A DNA stretch of 64,000 nt from Azolla caroliniana (Eukaryota > Plantae > Polypodiophyta). The DNA is taken from positions 20,212,001-20,276,000 of the forward strand of contig JBHGNT010000012.1 of NCBI GenBank assembly GCA_043228905.1, in the 5' to 3' direction. The notes under the pieces are model-generated. The model did not search any database. It was not told where the DNA came from and saw only the letters and a list, made by a program, of their open reading frames with translations. A program made the position numbers and the translations under genes. Positions 10,293 through 49,126 of the stretch are shown here, in pieces (the stretch's first letter is position 1; each line of letters starts with the position of its first letter).

Positions 10293-10339
10293 ATCCTCCT
10301 CTTGGAATCAATGAATTTACAGTCTAAGTCTATATGCCT

Positions 10340-16169: not shown

Positions 16170-19100
16170 TCAAATTAGACTCAACCGCAACAAAAAGTCC
16201 GGTACAAATCTTTGCATCAGTATACCACAATACGGGCAAGTTGCTTCTGAATCTGTGGTCTCGAATATATTGTGAGGTTTGTACAATAGCACCCCAAGAG
16301 AAGACTTGGAAGGCAGACTGAGAAAGGCTCTAGGAATTGGTTTCGAGGCCCAACGTCCACAGCAATTACAGAACCAGCACAAATTTGCTGGGCAAATCTT
16401 GAATGTCACAGAACATCTTGGAAGCTTGTGATGCTGATCACCCTGGCATTCTCCAGATTCTGATGAAAGAAATGGGATTTCAGACTTACAAACATAGCAC
16501 AGTTCACTAGTAGTTTGTCCACTATCATTCCTGTAATAAATATGAAAAACTAAGTGCACAAAAGTAAGATAAAAAAGGACATATATTGACCATTTGGATA
16601 CTCACAAGTATTGTGCAAGCATCTGGGTTATGTTCTGTACTTGGAATGATTTTCTTGCCCATTTCCACATGCATATGAACCCAGCAAAATCACCGTCAGA
16701 TCTGTCATTATCTTGACCTTTTTTGTCTTCTTTATATTTGAGCAATTGGGATGTTAATGTAAAATGGACTAAACGTTCTTTAAGCTCATGCTCCACTTCC
16801 AAAAAGCACTCTTTCCAACTTCTCTGATGACATTCTAATTGGCCAGCACATTTCAGAGGAACCAATTTTACTGCTCCATCATGCGTGCTCTCTGCTATAT
16901 ATAGACGCTTCAAGAGTACATACATAATGTGTAAGCATCGGCAACTGACTCTTGATAGGCTCTCCTTGAAGTAAGTCGAGCATACAAGAAATGTATTTTC
17001 TTCAGAATTGTTCTCTACTAATCCCAAACTTGAAAGCCACTTCGAAACAACTAAATTTAAAAATGGAGTCCCAACAATCGATGAAATTTGAATCATACTC
17101 GTGATTACATCCCAAAGAACCAATTTGTAAGCTGGATTCTCAAAATGATGGAGAGCAGCTAATATGTTTGCTTCCCAACAAGTTGTGTTGATCTTGCTAT
17201 TTGCTAAGTTCCCTGAAACCAGCGGGTTTAGAACTTGACCTCCAACCCAAAAAACCTGTGCCACTGCTTTCATGGCCCTATAATTACAGTACCGTATAAA
17301 TATAGTTAGCATTTCAGCTGGAACTTTTGATAATATGGATGACAAAAACAAGGATATTTAAGTTTTTATGAAAGTTGTAACAAATAGAGTATAGCAATAA
17401 CCAATATAAGAAACACCACAAATATACAAATATAGGATTTGATAACATGCCTCGATTGATACATCTGATCCAATAATTCACTTGAGACACCTCGTACCTA
17501 CCAACAATAAACATGGATTAGCATTCAAAGGAGACTTAATATCATTGAGTGCATGGAAATATACCGTCACTTACTGTAGTCAAACTGAGGTTTCCTTTCG
17601 ATATGTCCAATCCAAAATAACCATCCAATACAGAATTTGGAAGCTGCATCGAGTTTAGTGAGATGAAATAACAGGACAAAGAAAGAGATAGTTAAATTAT
17701 ACTTACCACATGTGAATCATCGAGAGGTTCTGGATCACTAGTAACATCCTCCGGGAAAGATACAGAAATAAGTTCGTTTCCAGTAAATCTCCACACCTCT
17801 AGGCTGTTATCCTTTATCCCAAAAAGGTAATAAGAAGGAATTAATTTTCAAGAAATCAAGTCAACACTCAAAGATGTAAAAATTGTTTCCCCAACACTTT
17901 ACCTGGCTGCAACTATATAAGCAACCACCTTGAAATGCCCACACCAATCCTGTTACCTTTTAAATGAATGCATAAAAGAACCAAATTATAATAATGTATT
18001 CCCACAATTGATTGATAATTTATTTTAATTGAATATCAATATTTGTTCATTTATAATACATTTATTCTGCATCTGCTGAGTCCTCAATTATAGACACCTG
18101 GCAAGCATACTTACTAGTTGTGAATGTGCATTAGGTTGACAGGCTTCACTAAACAAACCCTGCTTCCTTTTAATTTCAAACACAAAAACACCACCAGATG
18201 CTTTACCAACAGCTATCTGCAAATTGTTGGATGCCAAGTCTGGCACTATCAAAGCAACAGCTGTCACAGGTATCAAGTCCTCAAAAACCACCTGCCAAAA
18301 TACAGAAGCAAACATAATGCATAAACAATCATTGCATTTATCAGTCTAATGTAGTGAATTGGGAGTTCATTTTACTATCAATGAAAATATTGATGATTAA
18401 CCTTTCTTATGAGTGTAAGGGGTACTTTATTTGGCTTTCCATCATGAAAATCATGACAATCTCCAACCCACAGCTTTACACTACACTTCAAAAACGACAA
18501 AATTAGTAATCTAAATAGGAAGCTCAGTCAATCAAAGAAAATTCGAAATAAAGGCAATTTGCATTAAATTCAGTTTTCTTTTTAGTTTATTGAACAATAT
18601 GAAAATTGTTGGGAAGACTGCATATAATGTTGTTCTGACATCCTAGGAAAATGTACAATCAAACCAATGCACACTTGCCATAAAAGAACAATACGTAGTA
18701 TAGCAACCAACTTCTAAAAACATCCTTGCAAGATGTTGTTCTGCCAAAAAGTGAGTTTACATACATGGACATTTGCAAGATAAGACTGCAGTAAAAATTC
18801 ATGCAACTCTGAAATAAGAGTTCGTTTTGCAAAACTAAAACACCTACCCCTTTTTATTATCTATCTTAAGCATGGAAATATTAAATTTAAACAAGTCATT
18901 CTAAGCCTGAAATGATACCTGCCATCACAACTTCCTGTTACCAAGAGGACCTCTTCATCACCAGATAGGGTACTATGGTCATTGTTTTCAGATTTGTAGC
19001 ATTTGGCCCATGAGAGAACAGAAACCCATGATTCATGAGCCTCAAATACACCAATCATGCTGACTTCAGGAGCAAAAGTAACTTTCTCAAGACTGTAATC

Positions 19101-22100
19101 TCTTGGCATAGTAATCCTTAGCAATGAAACTTCACCTGACTTGGACCCCAACGCTATCAACATTGCATTCTCAGCTATACATCCTGAAGTATCACCTCTG
19201 TGGTTTTTTAAGCCTAACGTAGGTGAGCATGCAACTACGACAAAGCTCAACATATTGCTATATTTTTTATATAGAGAAGGGGAGATATTAGAAACCACAG
19301 CCTCATTTGTATCGATGTTGCATACTTTCACACTACAGTCTTGAAATCTATTCTGTTGTAAGGAAGAAAGTTTGCTTTCTGTCGAGCACAAAATCTGACT
19401 GTCAGGGTGTGCTGAAGTCATTGTAGATTGTAAATGTGTATTCTCTGTACTGAGTAAGGCATTTTTCTGAATGGATGCCTGCATAAATAAAAACAATAGA
19501 TAACATGAAGAAAATACAGCAGAACCTTTTGCTTTATATTAGTATATGTTTTCAATCATACCAAAGCTAGGGCATTTGAAACTCCAGAGGGATTGCTTGA
19601 TTCACGGTCAGAGTTGAAAGCCTTTCTAACCTCAACATTACAATTCAGCTCAACCCTTGGAATGTCAGAATCTGCCTTTAGTTTTGGACCTGCACTTCAT
19701 TAAATCATTTGTAAATTATATTAGACACAAATTCCAAAATCTATAAATATCAATATCATGAGATTTCCATGATAAAAACATCAACAAAGCATAACACCTA
19801 TATAATAAGTAGCGTCATGTAACCACACAAATTAGGCAATGTGTTTACTCTGGTTAGAGCTCATTTGCAACTGTTTTGAATCTTCAAACTAAAAATTTAC
19901 GCAAACAAAAAAGCATATAATATTTTTTTTGTAAATTAATGTTAACTGATAGTTGTTTTCCATGCTGAGACCTGGCGTATTCATATTATTCAAACTTTCA
20001 AACGTAGCCAAACCAAATTAATATGTACTATGTTTTCATCTGTAGTTTAAGGTATAATGTTTTTAATATATGCAGCAATAAATGAAAAGGATTTCATTAG
20101 AAAAAACAAGAGGATTGAGAATTTAGGATCACTTACTCGCAAGAGAACTGAGATCACTATCTACTGAATTAGATCCACCAGCGAGCCTATAAAGTATACA
20201 GTATATCATATCATACAAAAAAATGCAATTAGCTTAAGCATGTCAAAATACATTCTGGCAGATAATGTGACTTAAAAAGGAAAGATTCAACCTCAAAAAC
20301 AATACCAAAGAGCTGAATTAATAATAGCATTGGTGTTAGAAAGAGGTATACTAAGGGGTTCCAAGCTAACTTCGCACTTTGCTTTATTTTGATTCAGCTC
20401 CAGCTCATGTTATGATCATAACTGACTCCATTTGCTTCCATTTGGATTTAAATTATTTGGAAATTTCCATTGTTGACTCAGAGACAGATGAGAGAAACCT
20501 TAAGGACCAATCCTTGAGGACCAATGGGGTTGCTCTAGCATTACTACTCTCTCAAGTTGTGTTGTTTAAAATTGATTTTTGATACTCTTGTTAGCAATAT
20601 ACTAATTATTTCCCTATGCAAGGGCTACAAGCCCTTGGTGTCCCTATAGATATGCAAAGGGGAATCTATGCACAGTATGAATACGTGTCAGGAAAAGTGA
20701 GGTCTCCCAATGGTTCGTCAGATGCTGTGGCTAACACAATTGGAGTAAAACAAGGATGCCCCACAATCACCCACTCCCTTTGGTCTATATATAGATGAGG
20801 TATCACATTACACGCCTAGCAGGTATAGATGTGGATTTCTAAAAAGCCTTTAACATTGGATCATGCCCTCAACTCATGCAGCGGCTAGAAGTCTATGGTA
20901 TCCCCGTAAATATGCAAGGGGAATCTATGCACTATGAATCTGTTTCAGGAAAAGTTTGATCTCCCAATGGGATGTCTGAGGCTATGTCTAGCACAATTAG
21001 ATTTGCCACCCACTGTCTTTGGTCTCTATATAGATGAGGTATTGCATTACATAGAGGGATTTGGCAGTTCAGGAACATCCCTACAGGTATATCCATTCAA
21101 ATATTACTATATGCTGATGATATTGTGATGATATCCAACTCTCCAACGGCACTACAAAGTAATCTAAAGGCCTTAAAATCATTTTGTGTGAACTAAGGTT
21201 TCTTGTTTAACTTTAATAAAACTAAAGCGATGGTGTTTAACAGCATTTGAGCATGCATAACGAAGCAAGATCCAAAATTCTTCTTGGGAGAGGAAAAGGT
21301 AGCATACACACAATCCTACACATAACTAGGAGCAATATTCATAGGGCCTCAGTTTCCCATATGGGAGGCGGCCTGTGATCGACTTTCTCATGGATGGCAA
21401 ACCTTGGTGCTCTTGAAAGAGAATGTGCACATATAGAATTTGCCAGGCCCCAAACTAAAAAGTGGGTATTTGATATACTTTGTCACATTGACTCTTGCCT
21501 ACAAAGTAGAAGCTGAGAGACCGTATATTAACAGCGCAAAGCACTGCAAAAATTCAGAGTGACCTTTAGTCCCAAGTCTAAGCCAGATGACTCTAGGATT
21601 TAACTTGAGTTCACGGCTGTCTCACCTTCAAGCCCCCATCTCCTCCTACTCAACCTCTAACTTCGCCAACAATTCAAACCTCTCCCTCAACTCCACTCGT
21701 TTCCCCTCCCTCTACACACCAACTTCCACCACTTCCCAAGTAGCTTCAAGCCACCATTCATGATTCTCATCTTTCCAATGCTGAACTTCATGAGTATACA
21801 TCTGGTTCTCCGACCAACATGAAAAGAACACGTAAGTCACAACGGCCTCTTCACTCATGCAACTTTGCCTTACTGTACACTGTTATGCAATCACAAGAAC
21901 CCACAACAACAAAAGAGGCCTTTGTTCTTCCAAAGTGGAAAGCAGCAATGGAATTTGAACTTGATTCCATTGAATGGAATCATACATGGGAGCTAGTCCC
22001 ACGGCCTCAACATCGACAAGTCATTGGACTGAAATGGATTTTCATGGTACACCTCTATTTGAAGTGCGCTTGCACTTGCTACTCGCAACAAATGGCCCAT

Positions 22101-25100
22101 CTTTCAAATGGATGTCAAGTCAGCCTTCCTTAATGGTGACTTGAAAGAGGAGGTTTATGTTGGAGTCAGCCTTCCTTCCAAGGCAAGCCATTGATTGATC
22201 AGCTCCTTGGTCGACTCAATGTTGGACTGTCATTCTAGAGCTGGAGGAGGTGTCTTTCATCTTTATTATCTCTGTTCTACATTCTCTCTCTTCCTAGATT
22301 CTTCTCTCTCTAGAATCTGCAACACTTTAAATGTCTTTTCTCTCTTCCACCTTTTCCAAGATATTCCCTCTTATTCCTAGTTTATTGTACCTGTTTGGTA
22401 GTACAAGAGTCACTTGACTACCAAACAACCATTTCACCCACTTTCCCCAATTTTGTATAAATAGGCTATATCAACCCCTTTCGTAAAGACTTTTATTTTT
22501 GCTGCTACTTACAAACAAGTTCTACTCTTTGGTTGTGTCTCTACTCTTTGCAACCATTTTTTCTACTGCTGTCTAACAACCTTCTCACAGCTTGGTTGTG
22601 TCTATTTTGTTCCAACAATTGTTCTGTTGTTGCTATTAACAGCTTTTCTCACAGAGAATGGTCATGCTAGTGGAATCCCTAGAGAAGAAAGGATATACAG
22701 ATTATGTCACATAGAGGTGGAGAATGAGTATCACTAGGTTGAGATAAGGGCAAAATACCAAGACATACTATACTAGGACCCTCTCCCACCCTCTTCAAAC
22801 TATTAGATGCCCCAGATTTAAAACTACTAGGTAGATATATCTTAGAGCTCAAACAATATAGAGAGAATACGTTACAAAATGCTAACCATAACCTTTTTAA
22901 TATTCACCAACATAACCAATGAATTTTTTCAAGTACTGGAGGGGACGATGAGCATACACACACCTGCACCACTCGGCCTCTCCTTCGTTGAAGCAAAAAA
23001 CCAAAGAAGAACGAAATGCCCTTGGATGGTAAGCCTCAAAGTCACTTGTGTAGAACTAATTAAGAAGATAAGGGAACGTGAGTTACACCGCCTAGACACT
23101 ATGTTCAAGGTACCTTTTACATTGGGACCACAAGCCACACCCACATTGAAACCCTTTGACCGCCCACTCCTTTTCGAGAGACTTGGATGGAAATGAAAAT
23201 AGGCCTAGCACATAGCCATTTCGTTTATAGAATATGTTACACCATAACACCTTTTATACAATACTTGAACTCTTTTATAAAATAGGCTAGATAAGGATTC
23301 TCGTGCCCATGCTTTCCTCATGTTTAATATTAAACCGGGCATCGCTCGTCAATTTCAAGATACAAATGAAGAGACAGCCAATGAACTATGGACATCCATC
23401 AAAAAGAGGTACCATCGATCTAATCATGCTCAAATGATAGCTATTGAGAACCAACTAGCTAATCTCAAGATTCATGACACTCCCAACATCATGGATCAAA
23501 TAACGCAATTTGTTACTCTCCTAAAGGAACTAGTTTCTTTGGGAAGCAAGTCAACTGAAGTTGAGTTTGTGCATCGTCTGATGATAAAGTTGCCTGAGTC
23601 ATTCTCAGCATTTTGTGACACAATTTCTCTTCTTCCCAACACACCCGATATGAATACATTTCTTGGTATGTTACAAGATAGGGTAACAAGGAAGAAAAGC
23701 TCTCAAACTTCCAATGAGACACTTCTACATGCGAAAAGTAAAGGCAAGTGGAAGCAAAACGGTAACCCCTACAACAAACCCAATCCAAGACCACCAAACA
23801 ACCCAACCTACGAGGAGCTGACCTGTCATTATTGTGGCTACAAAGGTGACATTCAGCCTGACTGTCGGAAAAAGAAAAGAGACAATGCCAAGAAATCTTC
23901 TTCTACCGACAGTCAACCTACAACAAAATCAAACTCGGTCCACTCAGCCAAAGAAACAGTTTTCCTTGGCATCGAGGAACATACTTCACATTTGGCTGGA
24001 CCAACTACTTCAACCATCGATGAGTGGTTAGTAGATAGTGGTGCCACTTCACACATGACCTATGACAAATCCATTTTGCATGATGTGAAGCCTAGCTCTT
24101 CCCAAATCTCTATACGAGATGCCTCAAGCATTGAGGCTTCATGTGTGGGTAATGTGTTTCTTGACAATTCTTCAAGTGAAGAACCTGTCGTTCTTCAAGA
24201 TGTGCTACATGTGCCTCGCATCTCTACCAACCTACTTTTGGTTTACAAAATCACCAAGCAAGGTTATGGAGTCTACTTTGATAGCTCAGTTTTGGAAGTG
24301 ATTGACACCAACAGCCTACAAATTGTAGCTAGTGGCACACAAGAAGGGGGTTTATATCGCCTAAAAAGCTCCCATAGCCCCTTGGAAAACTCCAAATCTC
24401 ATCTTCTTCAAGGCTCTCATGCCTTGGTGGCACAAGAAGATCCCACGTTGTGGCATGCTAGGTTTGGTCATCTCAACTATGACTCTCTTCAAAAGCTCTC
24501 CTCTTCCAACCTAGTTGAGGGTCTTCCTATTTTCGAATCTCCCAATACCCCATGTGTTGCTTGTCTTCATGGCAAGCAACATCGATAGCCTTTCCCTCAT
24601 GAAGCCACTCACCGGGCAACATCTATCTTGGAGTTAGTGCACATGGATCTTTGTGGTCCCATGAAAACCACTACTCTTGGTGGTGCACACTACTTCATGC
24701 TTATAATTGATGACTTCTCTCGCAAGGTATGGGTTTATTTTCTTGTAGAAAAATCCCAAGCCTTCACAAAATTTCAAGAATGGTAGCTCTCGTGGAGAAC
24801 GAGACATCGAAGAAAGTTCGAAAGATCAGGTCGAACAATGGTGGAGAGTTTATCTCCCAAGCTTTCCACCATTTCTACTCTCAACGAGGCATTGCTCGCC
24901 AATTTTCTACACCCAATACTCCTCAACAAAATGGAGTCGTGGAAAGGAAGAACCGGACAGTCCAAGAGATGGCTTGTACAATGCTATCTCAATCTGATCT
25001 CCCTCACTCATTTTGGGGTGAAGCTGTCAACACAACAGTCTACATCATCAACTGCTGCCCAACAAAAGCAGTTGCTGGAATGACGCCTACAAAAGCATTT

Positions 25101-28100
25101 ACAGGTGTAAAGCCCTCAGTATCTCATTTTAAAGGCTTTGTTTGTGATGCTTATGTTCACATTTCAGATCATAAAAGGACGAAATTTGAGTCCAAAACCA
25201 AGAAATGCAAATTTCTTGGTTACAGCACACAATCTAAAGCGTACAAGTTATGGGATTTAGAGTCAAAGTCCCTAGTCATCTCTAAGGATGTTCATTTTGT
25301 GGAGTATCAGTCGGATGATTCTAGGATTTCACCTGAGTTCATGGTTGAAATCCCAGCTCCTCCTACTCAATCTCCTATTTTAGACGAAGATGCCTCATCT
25401 TCAAGCCCCCCATCTCCTCCTACTCAATCTCTAACTTCGCCAACAATTCAATCCTCTCCCTCAACTCCACTTGTTTCCCCTCCCTCTACAAACCAGCTTC
25501 CACCACTTCCCAAGTGGCTTCAAGCCACCATTCGATATTCTCATCTCTCCGATGTTGTACTTCATGAGTATATATCTGGTTCTCGAACACGTAAGTCACA
25601 ACGGACTCCTCACTCATGCAACTTTGCCTTATTGTGCACTGTTGTGCAATCAAAAGAACCCACAACAACAAAAGAGGCCCTCGTTCTTCCAAAGTGGAAA
25701 GCAACAATGGAATTTGAACTTGATTCCATTGAGCGGAATCATACATGGGAGCTGGTCCCACGGCCTCTACATCGACAAGTAATTGGATTGAAATGGATTT
25801 TCAAGACCAAATACCATGTTGATAGTACTTTGGATAAGCACAAGGCACGTTTAGTGGTAAAAGACTACTCACAAGTCGAAGGAGTGGATTACGAGGAAAC
25901 TTTTGCTCCAACAGCAAGGTACACCTCTATCCGATGTGTGCTTGCACTTGCTGCTCACAACAAATGGGCCATTTTTCAAATGGATGTCAAGTCAACTTGA
26001 GGAGGTTTATGTTGAACAGCCTCCAGGTTTCGAGATTTTAGAGCAGAAAAACACGGTCTAAAGATTACACAAAGCCTTGTATGGCTTAAAGCAAGCTCCC
26101 AAAGCTTGGCATGACAAAATTGATAGCTTCTTTCTCTCTCTTGGCTTTCAAAACTGTAATGCTGACAGCAATCTCTATGTTTTTTCCCAAGATAATTTGC
26201 TATGCTTGATCATATTATATGTTAGCGACCTTCTAATTACAGGGTCCCTTGCATCTAAAAATCGAGGAGGTTCGCACTGACCTGAAAACAACCTTTGAAA
26301 TGACTGATCTAGGACTTCTCCATTATTTCATAGGTATGGAGGTCTACCAATCACATGGTGGTATCTTTCTCAGCCAACATAGGTATCTCAGGCAGCTCCT
26401 TGAGACCTATAGAATGTCAAATTGCAAGCCACTCTCCTGTCCAATGGATCCAAACTCAAAGTTATCTCGTGAAGACAATTCTCCCATATTTGAGGATATC
26501 ACGAAATATAGAAGTTTAATTGGGTCCCTTCTTCACTTAACTTATACCAAGCCTCATTTGTCCTATAGCGTGAGTATTCTCAGCCAATTCTCAAGTGCTC
26601 CAAGACAAAGCCATTGGCAATCAGCTATTCGAGTTCTTCGGTATTTGGCCAACACACTCGACTATGGTTTGATTCTAGAAGGTCCACATCTGGCTATTGT
26701 TTTATGTTAGGTTCAGGCTTGATTTCTTGGAAATCGAAGAAGCAAAATTCAGTTTCTACTTCATCGATGGAAACAAAATATCGCGCCTACTTGGATACTT
26801 GCTGTGAGTTGCTATGGTTGATGCAATTGTTTTCTCACATTGGTGTTTTGCAAGACTCTCCTATTGCAGTTTTCACCGGCAGCCAAAGTGCACGTGCCTT
26901 GGCACATAGCTTAGCATTTCATGGTAGAACAAAACACATCGAAGTGCACTACCATTTTGTTCGTGACTTAATGAAATCACAAGTCATCAACTTGGCATAT
27001 TGCCCTACTCAAGAAAATGTGGCTGAATTATTTACTAAACCACTTCCAAGGCAAGCCATTGATTAGCTCCCTGATCGACTCAATGTTGGACCGCCGTTCT
27101 GGAGCTGAGAGGAGGTGTTGGAGGGTGGCAGCTCCAGCCCTGCACTCTCTTTCATCTTTATTATCTTTGTACTATATTCTCTCCCTTCCCAGATTCTTCC
27201 CTCTCTAGAATCTGCAACTCTTTTAATGCCTTCTCTCTCTAGAATTTGTAATGCTTTAAATGCCTTTTTTCTCTTCTACTTTTTCCAAGATATTCCCTTT
27301 TATTCCTAGTTTTTTGTACCTGTTTGGTAGTACAAGAGCCACTTTCCTACCAAACAACCATTTCACCCACTTTCCCCAATTTTGCTTCAGATGTTCCATT
27401 TGCTTCAGCATGGACGGTGTGAAGAGATGAGTCTAGAGCTAACGCCCTTATTATATGCTTCATGGATATCGACAAGAAAAAAGCTTTCCTATCTAAAAGA
27501 ATGGCATTCAAGGGTGAGAAAATATACTTAGATGACAATCTCACTCCAGCCCAAGAGGCACACTGCAACGAAAACATGTCACGAGTGGTTGACGCAAGAA
27601 AGGAAGGCAAATGGGTCGTATATAGAGTTGGTAAGGTCATTATTTCAAAGAAGAAACTTGCATGGCAATATATGGCCTATGAGACTATATGGAATTGCAA
27701 CGGATCTCTACAGACAGATGTCGGATATTTTGAAGATACCTTCAAAAACACAGATATTGCTATGTATACTGAGACCCACCAATGCATGGCTAGCCAACTC
27801 CCTCATGTACAAGGATATAGATGGGAGTCAATATGTTGTCCCCAACATCAGACACTGGGAAGCACTGGAGGTTCAGGAGGAGTGGTTGTGTTATACAAAA
27901 AGGAGATCCATGATAGAGTGCATGTTTACATAAGGAGGTAGATCTACGATACATGCAAATACGAATCAAAAGATGGGATCTTAGGGAGCTATATATTGCA
28001 ATTTGCTACTTTCCTCCTGCCTAGTATAGGTTTGCACCTCTCGGTGAATCACCATATCTACCATTATATGATGATATCATGAGATTTGTTACTATGGGGG

Positions 28101-31100
28101 ACATAATACTATTAGAAGACTTTAATGCACGAACCAAGGATGAACAAACAACAATGTTTGACGCCAACGAGGCTGTTTATGGAGAAGTTATGGCAAAGGA
28201 GGTTGGTCTAAAGCGACAAGCTAAAGATATGATTGTTATAACTAAATATGGCAAACATTTTCTAGCCTTGGGAAGTGCGCATGGATTTGTGATATATAAT
28301 GGATTGGCACAATGGCCTAGATCAGATGCTTTAACATGTCAGAACCCAAAAGGAGGTGCAAGCACAGTCAATTATCTAATGGGATCGCCATCTCTCATAA
28401 CTGAAAGATAGTTCACTATATCTAGTAGACCTATTGGCTTGGCAACAGATCATGCATATCTACACTTCGAGATAAAGGATGGATGCACAAGGGATGTATA
28501 TGAATAAGGAGAGTGGATTGGCTGAGTATCAATTTACTCGCGAGACAATTGATGTGTATAGTTGTGGAGTATACAATGGCATTCTAGATTTGGATCCTTT
28601 CGGACCCCTTGATGAACTTACCCAAGGACTGTCAAAATCATTGGATAAAGCAGTCATAAATGCCTTCTCCCCAAACTTGGTAGAGTAATACAAATTAGTT
28701 GGTATGATGCGGAATGTCGTGATACAAGGAGATGTTGGCAGCGTGAAGTAACTTGGGGCACTTATACGCACAAACAAGCGAGAGCAACCTTTCAATGCCA
28801 CGTAAGGAAGAAGAAGAGATTGTATTTAGCTAAATTTGAAGATCATTTGTATCGCTTGTTTCTAGGACAAGAAAGTAAAAGAGCATGGAAAATGTTTAAT
28901 GAGAGGAAACCTACCACACCAATGACCTCACATCAAGTGGCATGAATATGCAAAGGTCCTATATGATATCCCACAACAACCTCCTCTCCCCCAACCACAT
29001 GGTTTTGGCCCACATGAATCCACCTTTCTTACTGCGCAAAATGTAAGGAATGACATTGATCGGTTACAATTTGGGAAGGCCCAAGATCATGATGGATTGG
29101 TCGGTGAACTCTTTATCTATGCCCATGACACCTTGCTCCCAATGCTAGCACACATCTTTAATAAAGCCATGTGTGAAGGTTTCCCTACTAGGTGGATAGA
29201 ACATACCATTGTGTCGATCCTCAAGAGTGGAGACCCAATGATGCCAAGCAACTATAGGACAATCATGATTGGTCACTACTTGGCTAAACTATAAGGCTCG
29301 ATTCTAGAATCAAAATTAAGTATATGGGCAAGGCAACTGCCGTTTTGCTAGACTGCCAGGCTTTCGGAAGGGTTTCACAACTTTGGACCACATATTCCCT
29401 CCAAGCCCTTATCGAAGAGGGCAAAGCCCATAATAAGAGGATTTATCGCTGCTTTCTAGATTTCCGAAAAGCCTTTGACATTGCCACGTTGTCGTGAAGA
29501 TCCGTCAGTACGTGCGGATCGTGAGGCGGAACCGCGGGGGTTCTGGACCGGAAGGATTCAAAGTTTGCACTAGCTTTAGCGTGAAAAGATTTAAGATAGA
29601 TTGAGAGAGAGAGAGAGATTGAGATTGAGATTCCAATTTTGAAACAGATTGAGAAAGATTGAAATGGAGAGAGAGCTTAAGATTGAACTCTTGACTTCAG
29701 ATTTGAAGAACAAGATATACCATCAATTGGATAACGAATTTTCTTCTTTTTAAATTTTTGATTAATACATTGCTCCTTTTGATCTTTTTCATCCACTCTT
29801 TTATAGATGCCCCCATGCATATGATGCATGTGAGGGTACAAGACATGCATATAATGCATGTGATGCATGTTTGCCATTTGGCGCTCATGCATTACATGTG
29901 ATGCATGAAAACCATGTCACTTAATCAAGCTCTAACATGAGAGTTTACATGTGAAAGTATAATGATAATAAAAACATTTCTAAAGACATGACTTGGCTTA
30001 GTGGTAAGTTCATTGCCTCCTATCTTGGAGGTGCAAGGTTCAAGCCTTGCTTGCATCCCTTTGATTACAAATTTCTAATAGGTTTTTTAGTCTAGATGAT
30101 TTTGTTCGTTTCACACCGAAATCGTCATGATCAACCTATCCGATCGATCCATCTATCTGGTCCACTTTCAACCCGGTGATCCGGTCTATCCGTTCTGGTT
30201 CCGATTCCGTCGTCGTTCGGTGCCGGTGTTGATGCCGGTTCTGGTTCCGCGCTCATGCATTACATGTGATGCATGAAAACCATGTCACTTAATCAAGCTC
30301 TAACATGAGAGTTTACATGTGAAAGTATAATGATAATAAAAACATTTCTAAAGACATGACTTGGCTTAGTGGTAAGTTCATTGCCTCCTATCTTGGAGGT
30401 GCAAGGTTCAAGCCTTGCTTGCATCCCTTTGATTACAAATTTCTAATAGGTTTTTTAGTCTAGATGATTTTGTTCGTTTCACACCGAAATCGTCATGATC
30501 AACCTATCCGATCGATCCATCTATCTGGTCCGCTTTTAACCCGGTGATCCGGTCTATCTGTTCTGGTTCTGATTCCGTCGTCGTTCGGTGCCGGTGCTGA
30601 TGCCGGTTCTGGTTCCGTCGTCATCCGGTGTCAATTTCGGTTCCGTCGTCGTCCGTTCGTTCCGGTTCCGGCTCCGTCAACGTCCGTCCGATTCCAATTC
30701 CGGTTCTGTCGTCGTCCATCCGGTTCCGTCGCCATCCGTCTAATTCCGGTTCCGGTTCTCCAAAACCATTACGAGTAGTTAAGCCACAGTTTAGCCCAAG
30801 AACATTCTGTGCTCCACTCATAGACAGAAAGTAATAAGTTCTAGCTCTGCTTATATACTGTGGGATCCTGATTTGTCTTATCTATGTGGGATATCTCATA
30901 GTTTTGTTTTTCTCTTCTTCTTCTCAAACTTCACATTCACATAACTTGACATTTAGTTGTCCGTTTCAAATGCAGTTAAGTACATTCGGAAGCTCTTGAA
31001 GACCTCCATCTTCCAGTACCAAGATATTAAGCTAATCTAAAATAGTATCTTCACTATTATTGTTTCATGTCTTGTGTGAAGTTCATGTCTTGAAGACCTC

Positions 31101-34100
31101 CATCTTCCCGTACCAAGATATTAAGCTAATCTAAAATAGTATCTTCACTATTATTGTTTCATGTCTTGTGTGAAGTTCATGTCTTGAAGACCTCCATCTT
31201 CCCGTACCAAGATATTAAGCTAATCTAAAATAGTATCTTCACTATTATTGTTTCATGTCTTGTGTGAAGTTCATGTCTTGAAGACCTCCATCTTCCCGTA
31301 CCAAGATATTAAGCTAATCTAAAATAGTATCTTCACTATTATTGTTTCATGTCTTGTGTGAAGAACCACAATCGATTTTGTACATTCCTCGCAATTTTCA
31401 CACTATTGCCGAAAATCTTCACGACAATGTGCTCGGCTTATGCAATGGCTAGAAGCCCTTGGTGTTCCTACAAATATGCAATGGGGAATCTATGCACCCT
31501 ATGATTCTGTGTCAGGAAAAGTGCGGTCTCCCAAGGTTATGTAAAAGACAGTGGCCAAAACAATCGGAGTGAAGCAAGGGTGCTCACTATCAACCACTCT
31601 ATTCGGTCTCTATATAGATGAGGCATCACATTACATAGAAAGATTTGAGGTTCGGGTGCATACCTAGCAGGTATAGCTATACAAATATTATTATATGTTG
31701 ATGATATTGTGCTGATTTCTGACTCTCCAGAGGGACTATAAAGACATCTCAATATATTAAAACTATTTTGTACTGACAAAGGTCTGTCAATAAACATGGA
31801 TAAAACTAAAGTGATGGTGTTCAACACCACTCAAGCATGGGTAACTAGATCAGAACCAGAATTATTCTTGGGCGAGGAAAAGGTGGAATACACACGCTCC
31901 TACACATACCTAGGAGTAACATTTACAGGGCCTAGCTTCTCTGTATGGGAGGCTGCTTGTGCCCGACTTTCTCATGGATATGCAGCCCTTGGTGCTCTCA
32001 AGAGACAATGTGCACATTTGCAGTTCCAAGGGCCACAAACTAAGTTGTGGTTATTTGATACACTTGTCACACCAACTCTTCTCTATGGAGTAGAAACATG
32101 GGGACCGAGTCTTAACAAGGCGAATCATTGGAAAGATTTAGAGAGATCACTAGTGTCAATGATTGCCCGCATGATAAGGAGCATCGGTGCGCCATGATAT
32201 AATCCGGGCAGAGATGGGAGACACAAGTTACAATATATCTAACTTGAGAATCTCACATGTGCCAAAAACCAGATTCCCTTATCTATTTTTATCTTATTTA
32301 CTTTTATATTTACTGAGTAATACTTATTCTATTTTGATTTGTTGTTCTCAAAGATGAGACAACACTTAAGATGTAATCTCTTGTTTGGTCTTATAGGCCA
32401 TTTTGGCCTCTTAAAAGACGTCAATATATCTTTCTTTCTTTCTCCTCACATAGCAGCCCATTCCCTTAGTGTTTTGGATCTAACCACGCCATCACATCAT
32501 CTCTCTTTCAATTGGTATAAGAGAGAAAGAGTTTCATCATGATGAATTTCTATCTCATCAGGTGATTCTACAATGTATCCAACAAAAATGCCAGAATGTA
32601 TGCAATTGCATCTCACTACCACCATAAGCTTGGCTCTCTGAAAGCCTTGACACTTCTTTGAACTCACTCACACAAGGTAAGTGTTCAGGTAGCATCGCAA
32701 AATCATCATGCAAACATGAAGATATACAATGAAAATCTAGAGGAGGAAGAATATCGCTCACTTATTGCATGCTCAACACGTAAGGTAAGAAATACAATGA
32801 TCATTAGATGGGCATGATAATGAGAGTGTCATACTCAAATTTCCACCAAGAAGGGTGAGCACATATGTGCATCCATTATTTTCAAATTTGAAAGATTTGT
32901 ACCATATAGTACCCCCCTTCTTAGGAAGGAGTCACATACAAGATGATATGATGATTTGTTCCTACAAGTCAAAATTGGCCTCATCATGGACAATAAAGTA
33001 TCTATTCTACATATGGCAGCTAGCTAGTTCAGGGCACAATTTAATTTTGCTTCATTTTTACCAGAGATTTTCACATGGGAATATTTTATGGTTCTATAGG
33101 TCATTTTGAACTTTGAAGACATAAATACGACAATTATATTGACGATATGGATACCACCTTTCTATGCCCTAAATGTTCATATTATATAGAACTGCATTTT
33201 CAATCAGATATAATGAGGAAAATGTACGGCTACTAATATGGAAAGAAAATGTAGGGCTATTAATATGGTCAGGAAAGAGTGCACTTATAAATCAAGGAAG
33301 CCTCGGAGTGATGCATGTATGATTAAGCAGCATACAATCCCCAAAGGTCAATAAAGGAACAACTGCCTGACAAGGTGAACACAAGAAACTGAAAAAAGAG
33401 GGTATGTGCGGGCATCGCTGCATGCATTTATGGGGACAGATAGTGGAAGTGGATCAAGCAAGGACTGTTCACCTGCCAGACAAAGGTCCTCACATTAAAG
33501 CAGATATTTGTGAACTGATTGTTGGCAGGGGTCTTTTCAGCATTCTTTCATCACAGGAGGACCCAAGACCCTATAAAAAGGAAAATGCAATTGAAGCTTC
33601 AAGAAGAGAAGATTAAAGGTCATGCTTGAATAAGCACGATCCTCTGTAGATAAGATAGAGTAAGAGGCTGACAGCATGTTTGAATAGAGAATGAATCTTT
33701 GTACATAGGAGAGAGGAGTGAAGGGTTGCAATGCATGCATATGTAATTGAGATCTGTTACCAGCTCAATAAGGACATGGACTTTGGGTAAAGAACATGGC
33801 CCTGTATGAAATATTTTGCATTGAGAACCTGTCTTGTGCTATTCAATATATTTCTTCAATGTTGAGACAACATGTGGGTGACGATCAAACCATAGGTATT
33901 GAACTGCAACCACATTTAACCAGTGGCCTGTTCTTGTCAGTTTTCTGCAATAAGGACCACGCCAAGCTCTGCCAGGACTAGGAACAAAAATAGAAGTTTG
34001 CCACCTGACTTACTCCATTATTACCAAAGAATCTATCACTCTGAATCACATGATCATTTGGTATTGAAAGTAAAAAACAATGAATAATTATAATTGGGAG

Positions 34101-37100
34101 GATGATATTCATTTATTGCCATCATTAGAAACTCCTACCTGTTCTTAGTTTCATCTCCATCCTTGGAAGAGCTTTGTCTTCTCACAAATTTTGAACAATG
34201 TGCACTTCGCCCATCATCCTGTATGGTCAAAACTAAACAATCAAACTGCTTTATTTAACGCAAACAGCCTAAGAGACATATACATATAATAGGAGATATG
34301 GAAGATGAACCTTAATTCCTCCCTTGAAAAAATGATGATACACTATCTGAGACAGGTCCAATACCTACAATATGACATCAGAATATGCTTTGTCATAGAA
34401 AAATCATGGACTTCTGGTCCATAACATCAGTCACAAGCTCGCATTGCTTTTATCTGTTTCCTTGAAGGTTTAACAAGAAATATCATATACATTATTCATA
34501 TTCTTTTTTCAGGTAAGGTAGGATCTGCATATATTTCAGAAGTCTCCAATGTATAACTTCAATATCTATACAAAAAAAAGTGCATTGGAGTATTGGAAAG
34601 TTGTGGCATACTTCAACCCATTCACACTGGAATTCGGTATGTGGGGCATGGTAAAGTTTTACATGGAAGTCCTTTGTGCAGACTGCTAGCATGCAACTGC
34701 CACAAAGAGAAAAATGTTTTCTACATATCCTGTTCAAAACACTCATATTTTTTGGAATATCAAACATGGGGTTGGCCCTTACATAGCAGCAATAATCTTC
34801 TGTCCAGACTATATATATATGTTATTTCATACCATGATACCAAAAAGAAAAACATACCCTCCAGTTGGTGAAAATCCCTGGGGAGACCAATCCATACAAC
34901 GAACCATAGCTTTTGTGTCTCTTGACAAACAAATTGGCAGAAGACAAGGTGCCTGTAAATCTAATCATATATTTTGTTAAATTAGACTTTTAGAACGTTA
35001 AATCATCGAAGGAGTTATTTTAATTTGTAATACAACACCAATTCTAACAGACAGATCGGATTGTTCAAGAAGTATGCCAATCAACTCTAGCTTGCAAGTC
35101 TCCACATGAACGCATGCCATGTTAGATACAGAAAATTCATGTGAGATGTGGCACATATGTTAATTACAACATTACATGTACACAAGAAAGTCAAGGGCCA
35201 AGGCCTAGACAAAGTGTACTAGATATCTCACAATCACAGCCAAAGCATATTACAATGTTAAGATCCACAGAAAATAGATCGATGCAACTAACAACTAGAT
35301 ATTCAGTTGGTTTTTGTCATTACCAAGACAGAACTGCTTTCTATAGTGTTCTTCGAAAAGAACACTCGCAGAGAACTCAGCTGGATATGTTATTCCAGAA
35401 AGAGGAAACAGGATCACATTTGTCAAGACACACATCTTATGGTCAAAATCCAATCGACAAGCATGTACCGCCATACTACACAAGACAGTTCAAAAGATTC
35501 AGTAACGATGAGGATAACATGCATTAAACATGTTTCAGCATCAGCAATATTTTACAATTCAAAAGAAAGTACTAGAACATGCTGTGTCCTCTAAGTGACC
35601 ACCTTCAAATTGCTTCAAGTATATTGCTTTTTCATTAACAATATGAAATGCTTAAAGAGGATCTCATGGGAGAAATTATGCTAGCATTCACATTGTGTAG
35701 CAACAAAGGAATGATGACCCATATTTGCACATACTTTAGCATACGCATAAAAGATTGCTTTGCCTCTATAAGAATTTGCATTCCAAGATTTGACCTATGC
35801 CTTTGCAGGAGATGTGTATACTCGGAAAATATAAGTATAATCCATCTACTGACAAATTATCCACCTTCCTGCAGGAAGTCGTTCATCACTTTACAAACTA
35901 TTTTTCCTTACAAATTTAAACATGCTTCCCGGCTAACTGGTTGCATGGATGCAGCTTTCCTGCAACTAGCTATCTTTTACATGGCCAACATTTTGGGCTC
36001 TACGAAGAATCAGAAATATCACAGCTATATTCACTACTATAAAATGAGTTCCAAGTTCAGACTCATAATCCTAGTTTCAAGTTTCAATTGAAGCAATATT
36101 TACCTCTTGCTGTTCATATGATATTGAAATTTATACCTATGCTCTTTCCGTGATTTTTATTTGATCAAAAGGATGTTGTAACTTTTGTCTATAGGCCTAT
36201 GGAGGAGTTCACTTTATTTCAAAAGTTTCAATTACTCACAATGCACCATGGCTACCCACATTGATGCACATAATTATACATGTATCCTTGAAAACATTAT
36301 TAACTTCAATGCATCCAAGTGTACTAACCTATTGGTTTAATTCTTCCAACCTTAAAGGGCTGTTCCAACGAGGCACTCACAGATCCACGAGGACCTTCAA
36401 TAAAAGCTGGATTCTGTACAGGGAACCCATTAAGTTAAAACCAAGCACAATAAAAGGCTGAATACTTAATAGAAAAATATAATTGTATGCATAACCTTCT
36501 TCATTTTGATTGGTGAAAGCTAGTTTGCTAAATTGTATAATAAATTACATGTACGGTGTATTTAAGGCATTCTCTACAATATCATAAATACAAGAGAATG
36601 AAATACAATCACAGAGTTGACACAACTCAAGAAAATTACAATTGAATAGTCTAAATTGTTACGATAAATTAGGAGGAAAAGAAAGAGAAGAGCGGAGAAA
36701 GAGGAGAGATGTGAAATTTGAAGCAAGAATAAGACTTGAGGAAAAAGAACAGAAAGAGAGCTGTAGAAACAAATGTGAGGATGAGACAAGATGTAGCAAA
36801 AGTCAATTTGGAAAATAAAGTAAAACAAACTTGGGGATGTACTAAACAAAACAAGTATTTTCTTACTTTTCTTTTCACCTTAAATAATTCGAAACTGGGA
36901 TCATTAGTTGAGTCTCCAGAAAAAAAACCGATCATCTTTATGCATAATACTGCCATATAAACATACCATACTTTGCGGTAGTATGGTGCATGGAAATAAC
37001 CCTATGTGGAAGATCATGGTAACTTTGGACACCCTTCACACATCATGGTGATACAACATAGTCATATTTCAGAAAATGATTACACTTCAGCACATGCATT

Positions 37101-40100
37101 TGTTGCCTATTTTGTAATCAATTACTAAAAGGATTTATTGTATTTCATTAGGACTATTTAACCTTTGTATAAAGCAATAAATACTTTATATTTGAGCAAT
37201 TAAAATTTGTACAGTGCATGTTACATTTTTTTACTTATATTTCTTGTATTTTTCCACATTATTAGTTCATTATAAAGCTGTGGGTGAGGAGTCCAACTAT
37301 GGGTGGAGGACATCTGCACTCAACCTTTTGTTGTCTTACAAAATGAGGTTTCTGTATTAATTTGGTTCCTCTCCAAATATTCCAAAACTACCCAAGAATA
37401 TGACCTCCAAGTGGATCAGCCAAACAGAGCCATAATAGTGAGCATCATATACAACATCCTCCCGCAATATGTCTCCTACGATGTACATTGTGAAGACACA
37501 GAATCATTGTTCAAATGTTCAGCTCATATGAAATTCCATGTTGTGGAAATTCTTGTTCCACCTGTGGAACGCAGCTTACATACACAACAACATGCTATTG
37601 GCCAGTATATTGTAGCCCTTTTGAATGTCATGGTCAAGCCTCTACTCATAACCCCTGATTAACCTGTTGGTTGGCATTGAATTCAACCTCTTCAAATTCT
37701 TGTGTCATAATTTTTATTAATCGAGCCCCTTGTATGTCATTACAAACCAGTCACTATCCTTTAAATAGCAAACTTGTCCCAATGGCTCATTTGGCGTCTA
37801 GTACAAGCAGAGGCAAAAAGATAACCCTTTCCCTTTCTTCAGCACCGAAGCTATACTTGCAGAATATTTCACCAAATTAATTTCTTGTGACCATAAGCCA
37901 CCATATCCATTTTTATTAACTGAGACCCCTTGTATGGGTCATCACAAACCAACCTCTATCCACTATATATCCCGATGACCTTATCCAAATTAAGAGCGGC
38001 AGCAGCCAAGATGGCTAGTAGATCGCTATGGACTTCTGGACAAGCATATGTGTAACTATATCATAAAATTCAGGCTAGAGATAGGTCACTATGTAGAATG
38101 ACTGAAAGCAGCAGGAGATAGGAAAGCTAGTATGTTGGTTTGTACTTCTGGACAAGCATATATGCGACTACACCATAGAAGTCATTATAAGGCAAGAGAT
38201 AAGCCAATTTGCATATAGTTTGCACCAACAACTTTCTGGACAGAACATAGGATTGGATATTTATAAAGGAATTACATTATCTGAACCAAAACCTAATGTT
38301 CGTTCTACTCATGCTCTGGACATCAATGTCTCCCCTCTATGACAGTAGGTGGCCATGTCCAACACATGTGTTTCTAAGTCCCATGCATTGGTAAATCAAT
38401 TTTTCCTAAACACTGGTCAAGACTATCACCTACAGAATATATTGACAGCAAAGCCAAAAAACAACATGTCACATATAAGACGCCACAATATTTCGGAGCC
38501 TGTATCTGGACGGGAGATATGAACAGGATTCTCAAAGGCTCATGCCATTAACTGATATGGTATGACCTAACAAAGACAATGACAATAAGAAGACCCAAGA
38601 TCAAATCACGAAAGGATAAGTTTATGTGTGACCTAGCAGAGAAAATGACATGACATTCCTTGAAAGCTCAAAAGTCCAGATATGGCAATGATACAAAGTA
38701 GCCTTAAATAGTTCTAGATATAGCAATGACACAAAAACTTTTAGAATTTGAGCCATGTACCAATGTAGTATCAAGTATGACCTAACAAAGATGATGTGAA
38801 TTGTGCTTTGGAAGTTCCGGATATGGCAATGTGTTATGTCATGACCCAAAAAAGTGTAACTTCATGCCACAAACTGATATGATTACAACTGTGACCTAAA
38901 AACACAATTGCACAAGAAGCCTTCAAGGCCCATGCCATCAATATGTTTATGGGGCTGAGCCAACAAAGACATGTCACGAATGGCTACAGTGGAAGGTCCA
39001 AGTGAATGCAAAGATAGATATACTAAGACATGGTAATTACTGTCTGCGAGGGACCAATCAACTCATGGGACCAAACAGCAAATTTAAGGGATTCAATCGT
39101 CCCAAAAAAGGTGTCAGAAGTGAGGCCATGGATTAAGATGTCTAAGATTCTCACTGAACCTTATAATGAGAGCTATACATCGAAAGTTCATGCTATGAAC
39201 AAATACAATCACCGATGTGACCTATTAATGAAATACAAAACATGTTTCATGTTATGGACGAGAATGCCACAAAAGCGTTGTATTTCACGAGGGATTTGAG
39301 TCTTAAATTTAACCTTGAAACCATTGGATTAGACTTTCAATCCTTTAAGTTACAATGTGGCATCTTTTTTAGTGTAAATAATGGCTTTCATTGGAAAAGA
39401 AGAAACACCACCATGACTAGTAACTTACAACAAAGTATAGAAACCTTCTAAGGATCTAAATACTACTACTACGACTACAAACTCAATGCCACCTTACACA
39501 CCAATTCAAATGTCGAATACAATGATATGTGACCTTGCAAAGTTCTCTCTCTTCATGGTTGAGATTTCATAACTTCTCTAGCATTGCAAATTGCCACAAA
39601 ATAAGTCCTTTTAACTTTACAACATATTTTCTCACCCCCAACTTGTGAATAAAAAATGAAGGCATTCCGCATATTCCAATTGAACCATAGCCCCCAATAC
39701 CTCAAGAACTCAAAAATAATTTGGAAATGAGGCATTGGTTCACTATTTTCCATATGTGCAAAAACTCAATTGAACGAACATAATGTGGCATCTTCAAACA
39801 AACAGCTGTCATCAAGACTCGGCGTGTTTTTTTTTTTGTTTGAACATATGATTCCGCATATTCCAATTGAACCATAGCCCCTAATACCTCAAGAACTCCA
39901 AAATAATTTGGAAATGAGGCATTGGTTCACTATTCTCCATATGTGCAAAAACTCAATTGAACGAAGACAATGTGGCATCTTCAAACAACCAGCTGTCATC
40001 AAGACTCCGCATCCGCGTGTTTTTTTTTTTGTTTGAACATATGATTCCGCATATTCCTATTGAACCATAGCCCCCCATACCTCAAGAACTCAAAAATAAT

Positions 40101-40716
40101 TTGGAAATGAGGCATTGGTTCACTATTCTCCATATGTGCAAAAACTCGATTGAACAAAGACAATGTGGCATCTTCAGACAACCAACTGCCATCGAGACTC
40201 AGCAGGTTTTTTTCTTGTTTGAACATATGTACATGAAGCCCAAATTCCCTAGTTGTAAGAGGAAACGTAAAGACTACGTATACTGGAGAGAAAGAAAGAA
40301 AATGGAAATCTTACCAAGATAGTGATGAGTTGAGAGGTAGCCACAGCGATGAGGTTGTCCTCAGACCACTTGATGGCGTTAGGGTAAGAAGCAGCACCGA
40401 CGAGATGAGCAGAGAAAGCAGCGAGGGGACCTCCGGCGTCATCGTCTTCTTCTTCCACGGCCCGGTCTTCCTTCAAAGAAACGCGAAGTTCTCCTTCGCC
40501 GTCCACCTCGTCCTCTTCTTCTTCCTCTTTTTCTTCTTCATCTGCAACTGCACCTGCATCTCCATCTGCATATCCTTCTGCCTCTTCTTCTTCATCGTTT
40601 TCTTCTTCTTCCGCCCGCGCGCAAAAGCTATCAATTCCGGGTCCGCCATGGCCGCGTCTGCGTCTGCGGCTGCGGCTGCTCTCGCTTTCGTCTGATTGTC
40701 GACGCTTTGGCGCCAT
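16170..40716 (-). CDS. GTF3C4: General transcription factor IIIC subunit 4-like (TFIIIC 90 kDa/delta; WD40 + C-terminal zf-TFIIIC), 17 exons, ~1036 aa
   Basis: Exons (minus): 40716-40315, 36413-36329, 34960-34858, 34696-34612, 34364-34311, 34218-34139, 20186-20137, 19689-19562, 19478-18919, 18480-18402, 18291-18115, 17956-17903, 17811-17707, 17643-17575, 17497-17451, 17277-16606, 16530-16170. Splice phases are compatible and total 3111 nt. Motifs match recalled plant TFIIIC-delta proteins: SYPNAIKWSEDNLIAVA..ILNPAFIEGPRG, MDWSPQG..GCMLAVCT..VKLY..EWVEVLDLS, WD repeats (AHESWVSVLSW, LVTGSCDGSVKLW, AHSQLVTGLVW) and a C-terminal CYVC...HKLPRCSVTF..C...WFCNCC...CPYCGILMQR zinc finger. Confidence 0.85.
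20616..21565 (+). mobile_element. two adjacent degraded LINE RT fragments
   Basis: LQALGVP..GIYA.YE.VSGKVRSPNG..IGVKQGCP, LFGLYIDE and LLYADDIV motifs. The segment restarts at ~20876 and is homologous to 31430-32200. Confidence 0.8.
21570..22640 (+). mobile_element. internally deleted 3' part of a Ty1/Copia element plus LTR
   Basis: Near-identical to parts of 25310-27380 (EPTTTKEA..PKWKAAMEFELDSIEWNHTWELVPRP; FQMDVKSAFLNG). It then jumps to the PPT GGAGGAGG|TGT at ~22250 and an LTR with TATAAAT at ~22456. Confidence 0.85.
23290..27383 (+). mobile_element. Ty1/Copia LTR retrotransposon (gag-PR-INT-RT-RH, disrupted) with truncated 3' LTR
   Basis: Gag with a CCHC-like knuckle (CHYCGYKGDIQPDC), protease WLVDSGATSHM, GAG-pre-integrase LWHARFGH..C..C, integrase NGGEF/PQQNGVVERKNRT, RT KWIFKTK..KARLV/YGLKQAPKAW and RNase H RTKHIEVHYHFVRD. 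PPT GAGAGGAGG then LTR TGTTGG at ~27116. Stops/frameshifts at ~24588, ~24730, ~26000 and ~26260. Confidence 0.95.
29881..30618. repeat. 368-bp tandem duplication within the insertion
   Basis: GCGCTCATGCATTACATGTG starts at 29881 and 30249; the copies are nearly identical. Confidence 0.95.
29994..30046 (+). promoter_or_regulatory. tRNA-type Pol III internal promoter (A-box + B-box), copy 1; copy 2 at 30362-30414
   Basis: A-box TGGCTTAGTGG (29994-30004) and B-box GGTTCAAGCC (30037-30046) are 32 nt apart, with a T6 run at ~30083. Confidence 0.65.
30995..31362. repeat. 94-bp tandem repeat, ~4 copies
   Basis: CTTGAAGACCTCCATCTTCC starts at 30995, 31089, 31183 and 31277; the copies are almost identical. 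Confidence 0.95.
39664..40230. repeat. ~187-bp tandem repeat, 3 copies, in TFIIIC-subunit intron 1
   Basis: ATTCCGCATATTCCAATTGAACCATAGCCCC...GAGGCATTGGTTCACTATT...TGTGGCATCTTCA occurs near 39664, 39851 and 40044. Confidence 0.92.
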
Positions 40717-40732
40717 GGAAGCTCGCTCTCTC

Positions 40733-40767
<35 letters not shown>

Positions 40768-40788
40768 GTCTCTCTCTGTCTCTCGTTC

Positions 40789-40812
40789 CACAGGTCGCAG
40801 GTTCGAATCCTG
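40789..40812 (+). promoter_or_regulatory. perfect Pol III B-box / tRNA T-arm upstream of the TFIIIC-subunit gene
   Basis: GGTTCGAATCC at 40800-40810 lies in the hairpin CAGG-TTCGAAT-CCTG, preceded by the variable-loop-like CACAGGTCG. The motif is directly visible; its function is untested. Confidence 0.7.
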
Positions 40813-42019
40813 AATGTGTACACTACTAATACTTGTGTGTCTCTTTAGTTAAAGAGTTAAATTTAGGAATCCTCCTCCATATCAAATTGGCCCCCCTTCT
40901 TCATCTTTTTTATCACTGTTTTTAGAGCTTCTTCCTCCTGTAGACCTACCCTATATTTGACCTCCCGAAGACGATAATAAAATCTACCTATCCATGCATT
41001 GGCCCACACCATGTGCCAATCAATCCTTCCGCTCTTCGTTCAGGCGACGAAAAGTAAACGTTTCCCAAACGGGCGAGAACCCGTCTCGGTTGCTCCTGCC
41101 CACTCGTGCCACGACTCCGAACATGTGGGCATTGGTGTGTGGAATTGCTCGATCTTATTGACTAGCATAACCATGGATTTTGAGTGTTTGAGCATGAAGT
41201 ACGAGGAAAGGCACATGTGCATTTCCCCAATGTGCATGATTCTAATGTTTAACACAATTGTGGGTCCAAGAAATGTATGAGGATAGTCATCGATTAGGCT
41301 AAACCTAATATTGGGATGACATCTACAATGACAATGCTCCTAATTTGTTGATGTTTATGCTTGGAAGAACTCGATCAGAAGGTCATTTTAACATTATAGC
41401 TCATTGAACCTAAAGTCTACTCACATCTTGAGTTCCTTAACTTAGTTCTTTTTGTCCTTTCATCTCGTTGGACTCCAATTATCCCATTTTTTACATCACC
41501 GTCGAGTGTTTCGTGTTCTATAGTTAAAGTGCAACATGTGCTTTTCAATTAACGATAAGAGGATGGAAGTTGCATTCGTCAAAGCTTGACATTTTGAAGA
41601 CTAACGTGTGCCTAAATTTAGGCTGAGTTAACTAGAAGACCACATAGAAGGTGTGCAAGTTCATATTCAATGCTCAAAGAATAACGCGTATTTGTTTATG
41701 TCTAATTAATCGAGTTGTGTGTACTCAAGTTTGATACTAAAACGAAAACTCTTATTTAAATTTTAGATATAGGTCCTCTATATGTTTAGCTTTAGAAGAA
41801 TACAATGTAGAAGTTGGATGCTTTCAATTTCAATATTCAAAGATACTTGCGTGTTCAAACATTAATGTTTAAAGACTATTAGATGTTTAGATTGACAAGC
41901 GGAGGATATCAATGATGTGTGTTGTTTGAGTCCAATATTTGAAAAATAATTAATGTCTAGCTTTAGATTAAGTTAATTTACTCGTTAACAATCAAGTTTG
42001 ATGCTTGAAGAGTAACACA

Positions 42020-48860: not shown

Positions 48861-49126
48861 TTTGCTTTTTTGCTTTTTTTGGGCAGTTTTGATTTCCTGC
48901 ACGTATATATATATGTATGTATATGTATATGCTGCATTGCTGTAGCTCGTTTTCAAAAGCTTCAAATTCTTTTCTCAGAGAGTGAGACACACACTCTCTC
49001 TGTCTCTGTCTCTGTCTCTCTCTGTCTCTCTCACGCACAAACAAATGGAATGGAATGATTCTCTCTCTCGCTTGGCTCAATAGCTATGGATCTTCTCATC
49101 ACATAGATCCTCACTGTATTCACTCA

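Follow-up and report, generated by a model that had tools for sequence, protein, structure and literature searches.

A conserved B-box near the start of plant GTF3C4/Tfc8 genes is a candidate site for feedback of TFIIIC on its own tau60 subunit

The closest described counterpart of the element analysed here is ETC6 of Saccharomyces cerevisiae, a lone B-box near upstream of TFC6, a gene for a tauB subunit; according to a commentary (PMC3334521), TFIIIC on ETC6 lowers TBP occupancy and reduces TFC6 mRNA about twofold, a B-box by itself is enough for binding, and the feedback proposed is negative and acts on Pol II initiation. The initial annotation of this DNA had named ETC6 as a case of negative autoregulation, which agrees with that commentary. 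The plant locus resembles ETC6 in having a lone B-box close to the start of a gene for a tauB subunit but the subunit is Tfc8/GTF3C4 and not Tfc6/GTF3C2, the organism belongs to another kingdom, and the site seems to lie at or within the start or in the 5' leader whereas ETC6 lies upstream of the start. The ETC and COC sites of yeast and animals are likewise B-boxes near Pol II genes without a conserved A-box (PMC3395662, PMC12409998), although they are defined by TFIIIC occupancy in the absence of TFIIIB and Pol III; the plant site is a candidate for this class by its sequence. The antisense MIR in intron 1 of mammalian Polr3e is a precedent for a Pol III promoter element that has been conserved, in antisense orientation, within a gene encoding Pol III machinery; it is intronic, carries both A and B boxes and is transcribed by Pol III, whereas at the plant site only the B-box is conserved (PMC5358760). 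A further counterpart, from plants, is P5SM (PMC3378873), the 5S-mimic exon of TFIIIA. There, too, a Pol III factor is under feedback, exerted by a mimic of part of a Pol III gene. The searchable literature, outside which most subscription journals lie, yielded no B-box at a plant TFIIIC gene and no example of an ETC-type site in plants, nor did we find in it a paper on how plants control the level of the tRNA-transcription machinery or on the action of TFIIIC on plant Pol II genes.

The window (the whole stretch of 64,000 nucleotides of Azolla caroliniana DNA that was analysed) carries on its minus strand a gene whose ATG lies at 40716. Its identity was established from exons searched singly, without a joined protein model. 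The last exon is above cut-off for PF12660 (zf-TFIIIC) and a search with it returned plant proteins annotated as the TFIIIC 90-kDa subunit, the end of exon 1 matches PF12657 (TFIIIC_delta) from model position 1, although weakly (E 0.065), and plant TFIIIC-90kDa proteins match all exons one by one over 40470-16173. The identification as GTF3C4/Tfc8-like, already proposed from the letters, is thus upheld. In a tree of the largest single exon the window falls within the leptosporangiate-type ferns on a long branch, nearest to fern locus L003 (44% identity over that exon), and in an RNA run of a relative exon 1 is spliced both to 36413 (exon 2) and to 34952 (exon 3). On these grounds it is a fern GTF3C4/Tfc8 (tau60) gene that is expressed. 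The second of these junctions comes from a single contig of run X6 (organism C), which joins exon 1 (40315) straight to exon 3 (34952), so that exon 2, where the propeller starts, is skipped, apparently in frame. Intron 1 holds a 193-nt unit in three tandem copies (39664-40229) and at 21084-32197 the large intron is filled with Copia-type remains (integrase and RT at 24729-27066, part of them duplicated at 21826-22044) together with fragments of other elements. The neighbours are, at 9546-10307 on the minus strand, a Senescence_reg (PF04520) gene and, at 49055-49888 on the plus strand, the first exon of a protein kinase gene with a long acidic repeat.

Re-reading of the window letters bore out every coordinate claimed earlier for the B-box, the hairpin, the 25-mer, the A-like block, the microsatellite and the T6 run, which are given here together with those of the gene.

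16170..40716, minus strand: entire GTF3C4-like gene with 11 or more exons in tblastn, the last exon zf-TFIIIC
40315..40716, minus strand: coding exon 1 of GTF3C4/Tfc8 (tau60), an acidic N-terminus followed by the start of the TFIIIC_delta propeller
40708..40722, plus strand: block resembling an A-box, covering the start codon on the opposite strand and not kept in orthologues
40722..40784, no strand assigned: CT/CTGT microsatellite in the 5' leader, between the ATG and the B-box
40788..40812, plus strand: tRNA-like 25-nt 3' block (3' strand of the anticodon stem, variable loop, T arm)
40791..40807, plus strand: extended block, a variable-loop-like 5' flank plus the B-box core, 16/17 nt identical in fern L003
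40798-40812, plus strand: hairpin CAGG-TTCGAAT-CCTG enclosing the B-box
40800..40810, plus strand: perfect B-box, predicted tauB/TFIIIC site, the conserved element, which recurs in orthologues
40906..40911, plus strand: T6 run, candidate Pol III terminator, broken in relative D

The B-box GGTTCGAATCC lies antisense to GTF3C4, 84-94 nt before the ATG, and is the sole perfect B-box on either strand of the 64 kb (0.01 expected from dinucleotide shuffles). The microsatellite that separates it from the ATG is missing from the fern orthologues L003 and L005 and therefore represents a lineage-specific expansion. A folding test found the B-box region no more stable than its shuffles; the hairpin is conserved in ferns and legumes only and T-stem pairing has been lost in several lineages, which points to a DNA site rather than an RNA fold. 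This sets the element apart from P5SM, the suicide exon of TFIIIA, which works as an RNA structure in splicing. The possibility of a recent SINE had been named at the outset as something to be checked, and the element looks single-copy and not a recent SINE because two DNA runs each gave one contig per haplotype over the B-box site (80% likeness) and the window contains no second copy. Upstream of the B-box a short multicopy repeat (40952-40999) appears in several contigs in each of the two DNA runs. Within an intron of GTF3C4 a 300-nt unit is duplicated at 99% (29881-30548), and each copy carries a tRNA-derived element with an A-box TGGCTTAGTGG and a degenerate B-box (~29993-30047, and again 368 nt on), so that the background of B-boxes is raised here.

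Orthologous GTF3C4 loci were fetched and the DNA upstream of the ATG was inspected, conservation in orthologues having been proposed in the initial annotation as a check. The antisense box recurs near the ATG from ferns to eudicots, in 5/10 other lineages: one further fern, a lycophyte, the legumes, a crucifer and a member of the Caryophyllales, in all of which it lies 15-165 nt upstream of the ATG. The nearest fern sequence (L003) is an mRNA contig that starts within the antisense B-box, and 16 of the 17 nt of its extended block match the window. The fern-clade locus L005 has GGATCGATTCC in antisense orientation 28 nt upstream of its second ATG; the gene caller's first ATG would place the box in the first codons and the next ATG was taken instead. 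In the lycophyte Diphasiastrum (L006) the antisense sequence GGATCGATCCC is at -15, three legume-type loci (L014, L017 and L019) carry the perfect GGTTCGAATCC at -45 to -47, the Caryophyllales-type locus (L029) has AGTTCGACTCC at -164, and the Brassicaceae-type locus (L033) has AGTTCGAATCG at -107 with a duplicate at -255. In the variants seen the B-box pattern (G, T/A, TCGA, any, pyrimidine, C) is preserved, and the box has been retained even though its flanks cannot be aligned between ferns and eudicots and its spacing varies over 15-165 nt. The GC that extends the yeast ETC B-box upstream is present among the plant loci, ~11 nt upstream, only in the legumes and L005 and is lacking in the window, L006, L029 and L033.

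The crucifer locus holds a second gene, head-to-head with GTF3C4, whose partial exon matches Tau95_N with an E value of 2e-4, just under the cut-off. In this stretch (L033:1159-1980) GTF3C4 and the GTF3C5-like gene share a promoter that contains a duplicated unit, its copies ~148 nt apart with one B-box each, so that two B-boxes lie in a promoter shared by two genes for TFIIIC subunits.

No antisense box turned up in either of two Sphagnum species, in 6 kb of Brachypodium, in panicoid grasses or green algae, or in the 980-nt leader of a conifer transcript that may stop short of the true 5' end. In these lineages the box is either dispensable or has been replaced. The Sphagnum loci (L002, L009 and L013) have at -107 from the ATG the sense sequence GGAACGAWTCC, with one mismatch to the lenient B-box at an invariant position, and a conifer locus (L049) has GGTTCGAGGCT on the sense strand at -20. 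One rearranged legume copy without a start codon (L027:1770-1900) has its upstream DNA inverted and a 12-nt deletion running through the B-box, with flanks that are alike, which is a single case. The survey did not extend to Ceratopteris or to the two Adiantum loci (A. capillus-veneris and A. nelumboides); that of A. nelumboides served as background only and its model (L001:3001-17573) lacks the true first exons, beginning with an unrelated first exon and missing the N-terminal 127 residues, probably an annotation error. A search of viral contigs for GTF3C4 gave one weak locus, which was left out.

For the statistics the window was left out, one locus was taken per lineage, within-lineage duplicates and the legume loci L016, L018 and L027 (fused or rearranged, without a start of their own) were omitted, and the truncated L003 was scored negative. 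The antisense core G[AT]TCGA..C occurs no more than 200 nt upstream of the ATG in 5/10 non-discovery land-plant lineages against 0.19-0.26 expected (P 3e-7 to 2e-6, per-locus dinucleotide shuffles), these values being based on the core motif and not on a stricter 11-mer pattern that was shaped after the data had been seen. P stays at or below 2e-4 if 500 nt are searched, if L005 is dropped or if four algae are included. Among ~4,000 motifs of its shape seen in the upstream regions it is the only one common to five lineages. Elsewhere in the plant loci the core occurs once per 17 kb of strand, and in the three other genes of the window, the background set used, it is absent. When both strands are counted the score is 8/10, the conifer and grass having weaker sense cores and L003 being palindromic.

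These results show a B-box that orthologues of a tauB-subunit gene in vascular plants have kept close to the start and in the same orientation. TauB binds the B-box with high affinity without need of an A-box. The tau60 protein itself is a member of the tauB core, by which the B-box is recognised (PMC11811891), and plant lineages do not differ in their consensus for the A and B boxes (PMC13437025). The L003 mRNA contig begins in the box, that of L005 runs 64 nt past it and the RNA-like runs of the relatives of the window end before it; from these contig ends, which cannot map a start exactly, we infer that the box lies at or just inside the transcription start. We therefore favour, with a probability of about 0.58, a reading of the box as a lone ETC-type candidate site, maintained by selection, through which TFIIIC may limit its own tau60 subunit by negative feedback. 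TFIIIC assembled in excess of what the tRNA genes take up would occupy the B-box at the start of GTF3C4, bound TFIIIC would hinder Pol II pre-initiation or early elongation, and the reduced Pol II output would lower tau60 mRNA, a negative feedback like that of ETC6 on TFC6 in yeast. The duplicated site of crucifers could at the same time limit the GTF3C5-like gene that lies head-to-head with GTF3C4. Such feedback needs no Pol III transcript. That TFIIIC binding at the predicted site is under selection we judge to be likely, and given binding a negative effect is somewhat less firmly expected, although still probable; whether the effect is negative or positive cannot be read from conservation.

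The alternative that survives best is one in which bound TFIIIC acts positively or structurally, by keeping the promoter nucleosome-free, by fixing the start site or by insulating the gene from the heterochromatin of flanking transposons. It accounts for the conservation equally well, the fern gene is surrounded by retroelement remnants, ETC sites serve as barriers and insulators (PMC3395662, PMC12409998), and yeast Pol II starts shift when the binding of a Pol III complex is lost (PMC4228148). We nevertheless consider it unlikely, since it leaves unexplained why the gene for a TFIIIC subunit in particular carries the site when the motif is missing from three other window genes, and the sole tested case on a TFIIIC gene, ETC6, is repressive.

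A second alternative, close to a suggestion of the initial annotation, is that the A-like block and the B-box together make up a type 2 Pol III promoter, perhaps a relic of an initiator tRNA, from which an antisense RNA of ~210 nt over the ATG and leader would interfere with Pol II in the manner of the Polr3e MIR, the precedent for such an arrangement (PMC5358760). The A-like block lies 92 nt before the B-box and the T6 run 96 nt after it. The block is indeed located over the antisense of the ATG but a function as an A-box is not supported. Its 9/11 match to the A-box is near chance (P 0.07-0.13, local shuffles; one such match per 1.3 kb of window), no A-box was found at a fixed spacing or register in the orthologues, the closest fern has four mismatches in the block, and its letters coincide with the ccATGGCG start context, of which it is probably a by-product. 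Nor is the terminator kept: in relative D a substitution and the loss of 3 nt interrupt the T6 run, and the distance to a T-run varies over 13-197 nt across orthologues; the upstream DNA of relative D aligns from 40791 at ~12% divergence, and the differences listed are compatible with an identical B-box. The RNA-like runs X5 and X6 gave no contig over 40790-41449, beyond the microsatellite, a weak point against an abundant antisense RNA since contigs cannot show absence. A check of the region for a tRNA had also been proposed, and ARAGORN and Rfam called none at the element, with neither a cloverleaf nor a covariance-model match.

As to the likeness to initiator tRNA, the D-arm block matches at 12/15 (P 0.002-0.005, uncorrected and post hoc) and its 15-mer occurs in papers on animal iMet. 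The 22/25 match of the 3' block had been made against a presumed plant initiator tRNA sequence, and an initiator tRNA reference sought in viral contigs was not found there. Phage and bacterial tRNAs for Met, Arg and Ser contain the exact 25-mer, which is accordingly a generic sequence of variable loop and T arm. Initiator tRNAs have A at position 54, as do the boxes of L005 and L006, and because of this and the D-arm match the element may possibly descend from an initiator tRNA. Taken together, the earlier idea of a TFIIIC site on a TFIIIC gene stands in its conserved B-box, while the A-box, the initiator tRNA and the antisense Pol III RNA are not supported, and we regard the Pol III promoter as improbable.

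Scarcely less probable is that another factor binds the motif or that it is a general element of plant Pol II start regions which happens to resemble a B-box. A telo-box (AAACCCTA) does lie 8-14 nt from the B-box in three lineages (the fern-clade transcript L005, L029 and L033), and the near-palindromic core is also found in sense orientation in conifer and grass, but the retention of B-box positions by the variants and the rarity of the motif elsewhere in the plant loci argue against it. Least probable is a neutral remnant of a tRNA pseudogene, SINE or LTR cassette, or chance, for which the tRNA-derived A/B element in the GTF3C4 intron (~29990-30045) and the natural tRNA sequence of the 25-mer can be cited but which is at odds with the apparent single-copy state of the element and is largely refuted by the lineage statistics; neutral DNA would not last from lycophyte to eudicots when the protein itself is only ~35-55% identical.

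Returning to feedback on tau60, its fullest form would have the B-box at the start of GTF3C4 kept since before the lycophyte–euphyllophyte split, with TFIIIC repressing tau60 and, in crucifers, also the head-to-head tau95; the loop would have arisen independently of that on yeast TFC6, perhaps when an initiator tRNA was inserted in antisense, and its B-box would be the first regulatory site of ETC type reported from plants. To this whole chain we would give even odds. The presence of a predicted TFIIIC B-box on the gene for a TFIIIC subunit in ferns, a clubmoss and several flowering plants suggests a self-limiting loop which, in the searchable literature, has been shown only for another subunit in yeast. 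The conserved 11-bp target, present also in a crucifer near Arabidopsis, offers a handle on the control of TFIIIC level and on the action of TFIIIC on Pol II genes, with the grasses and mosses, in which the box was not found, as natural comparisons. If the loop is true, yeast and plants would share the same homeostatic logic on different tauB subunits, a convergent control of TFIIIC dosage.
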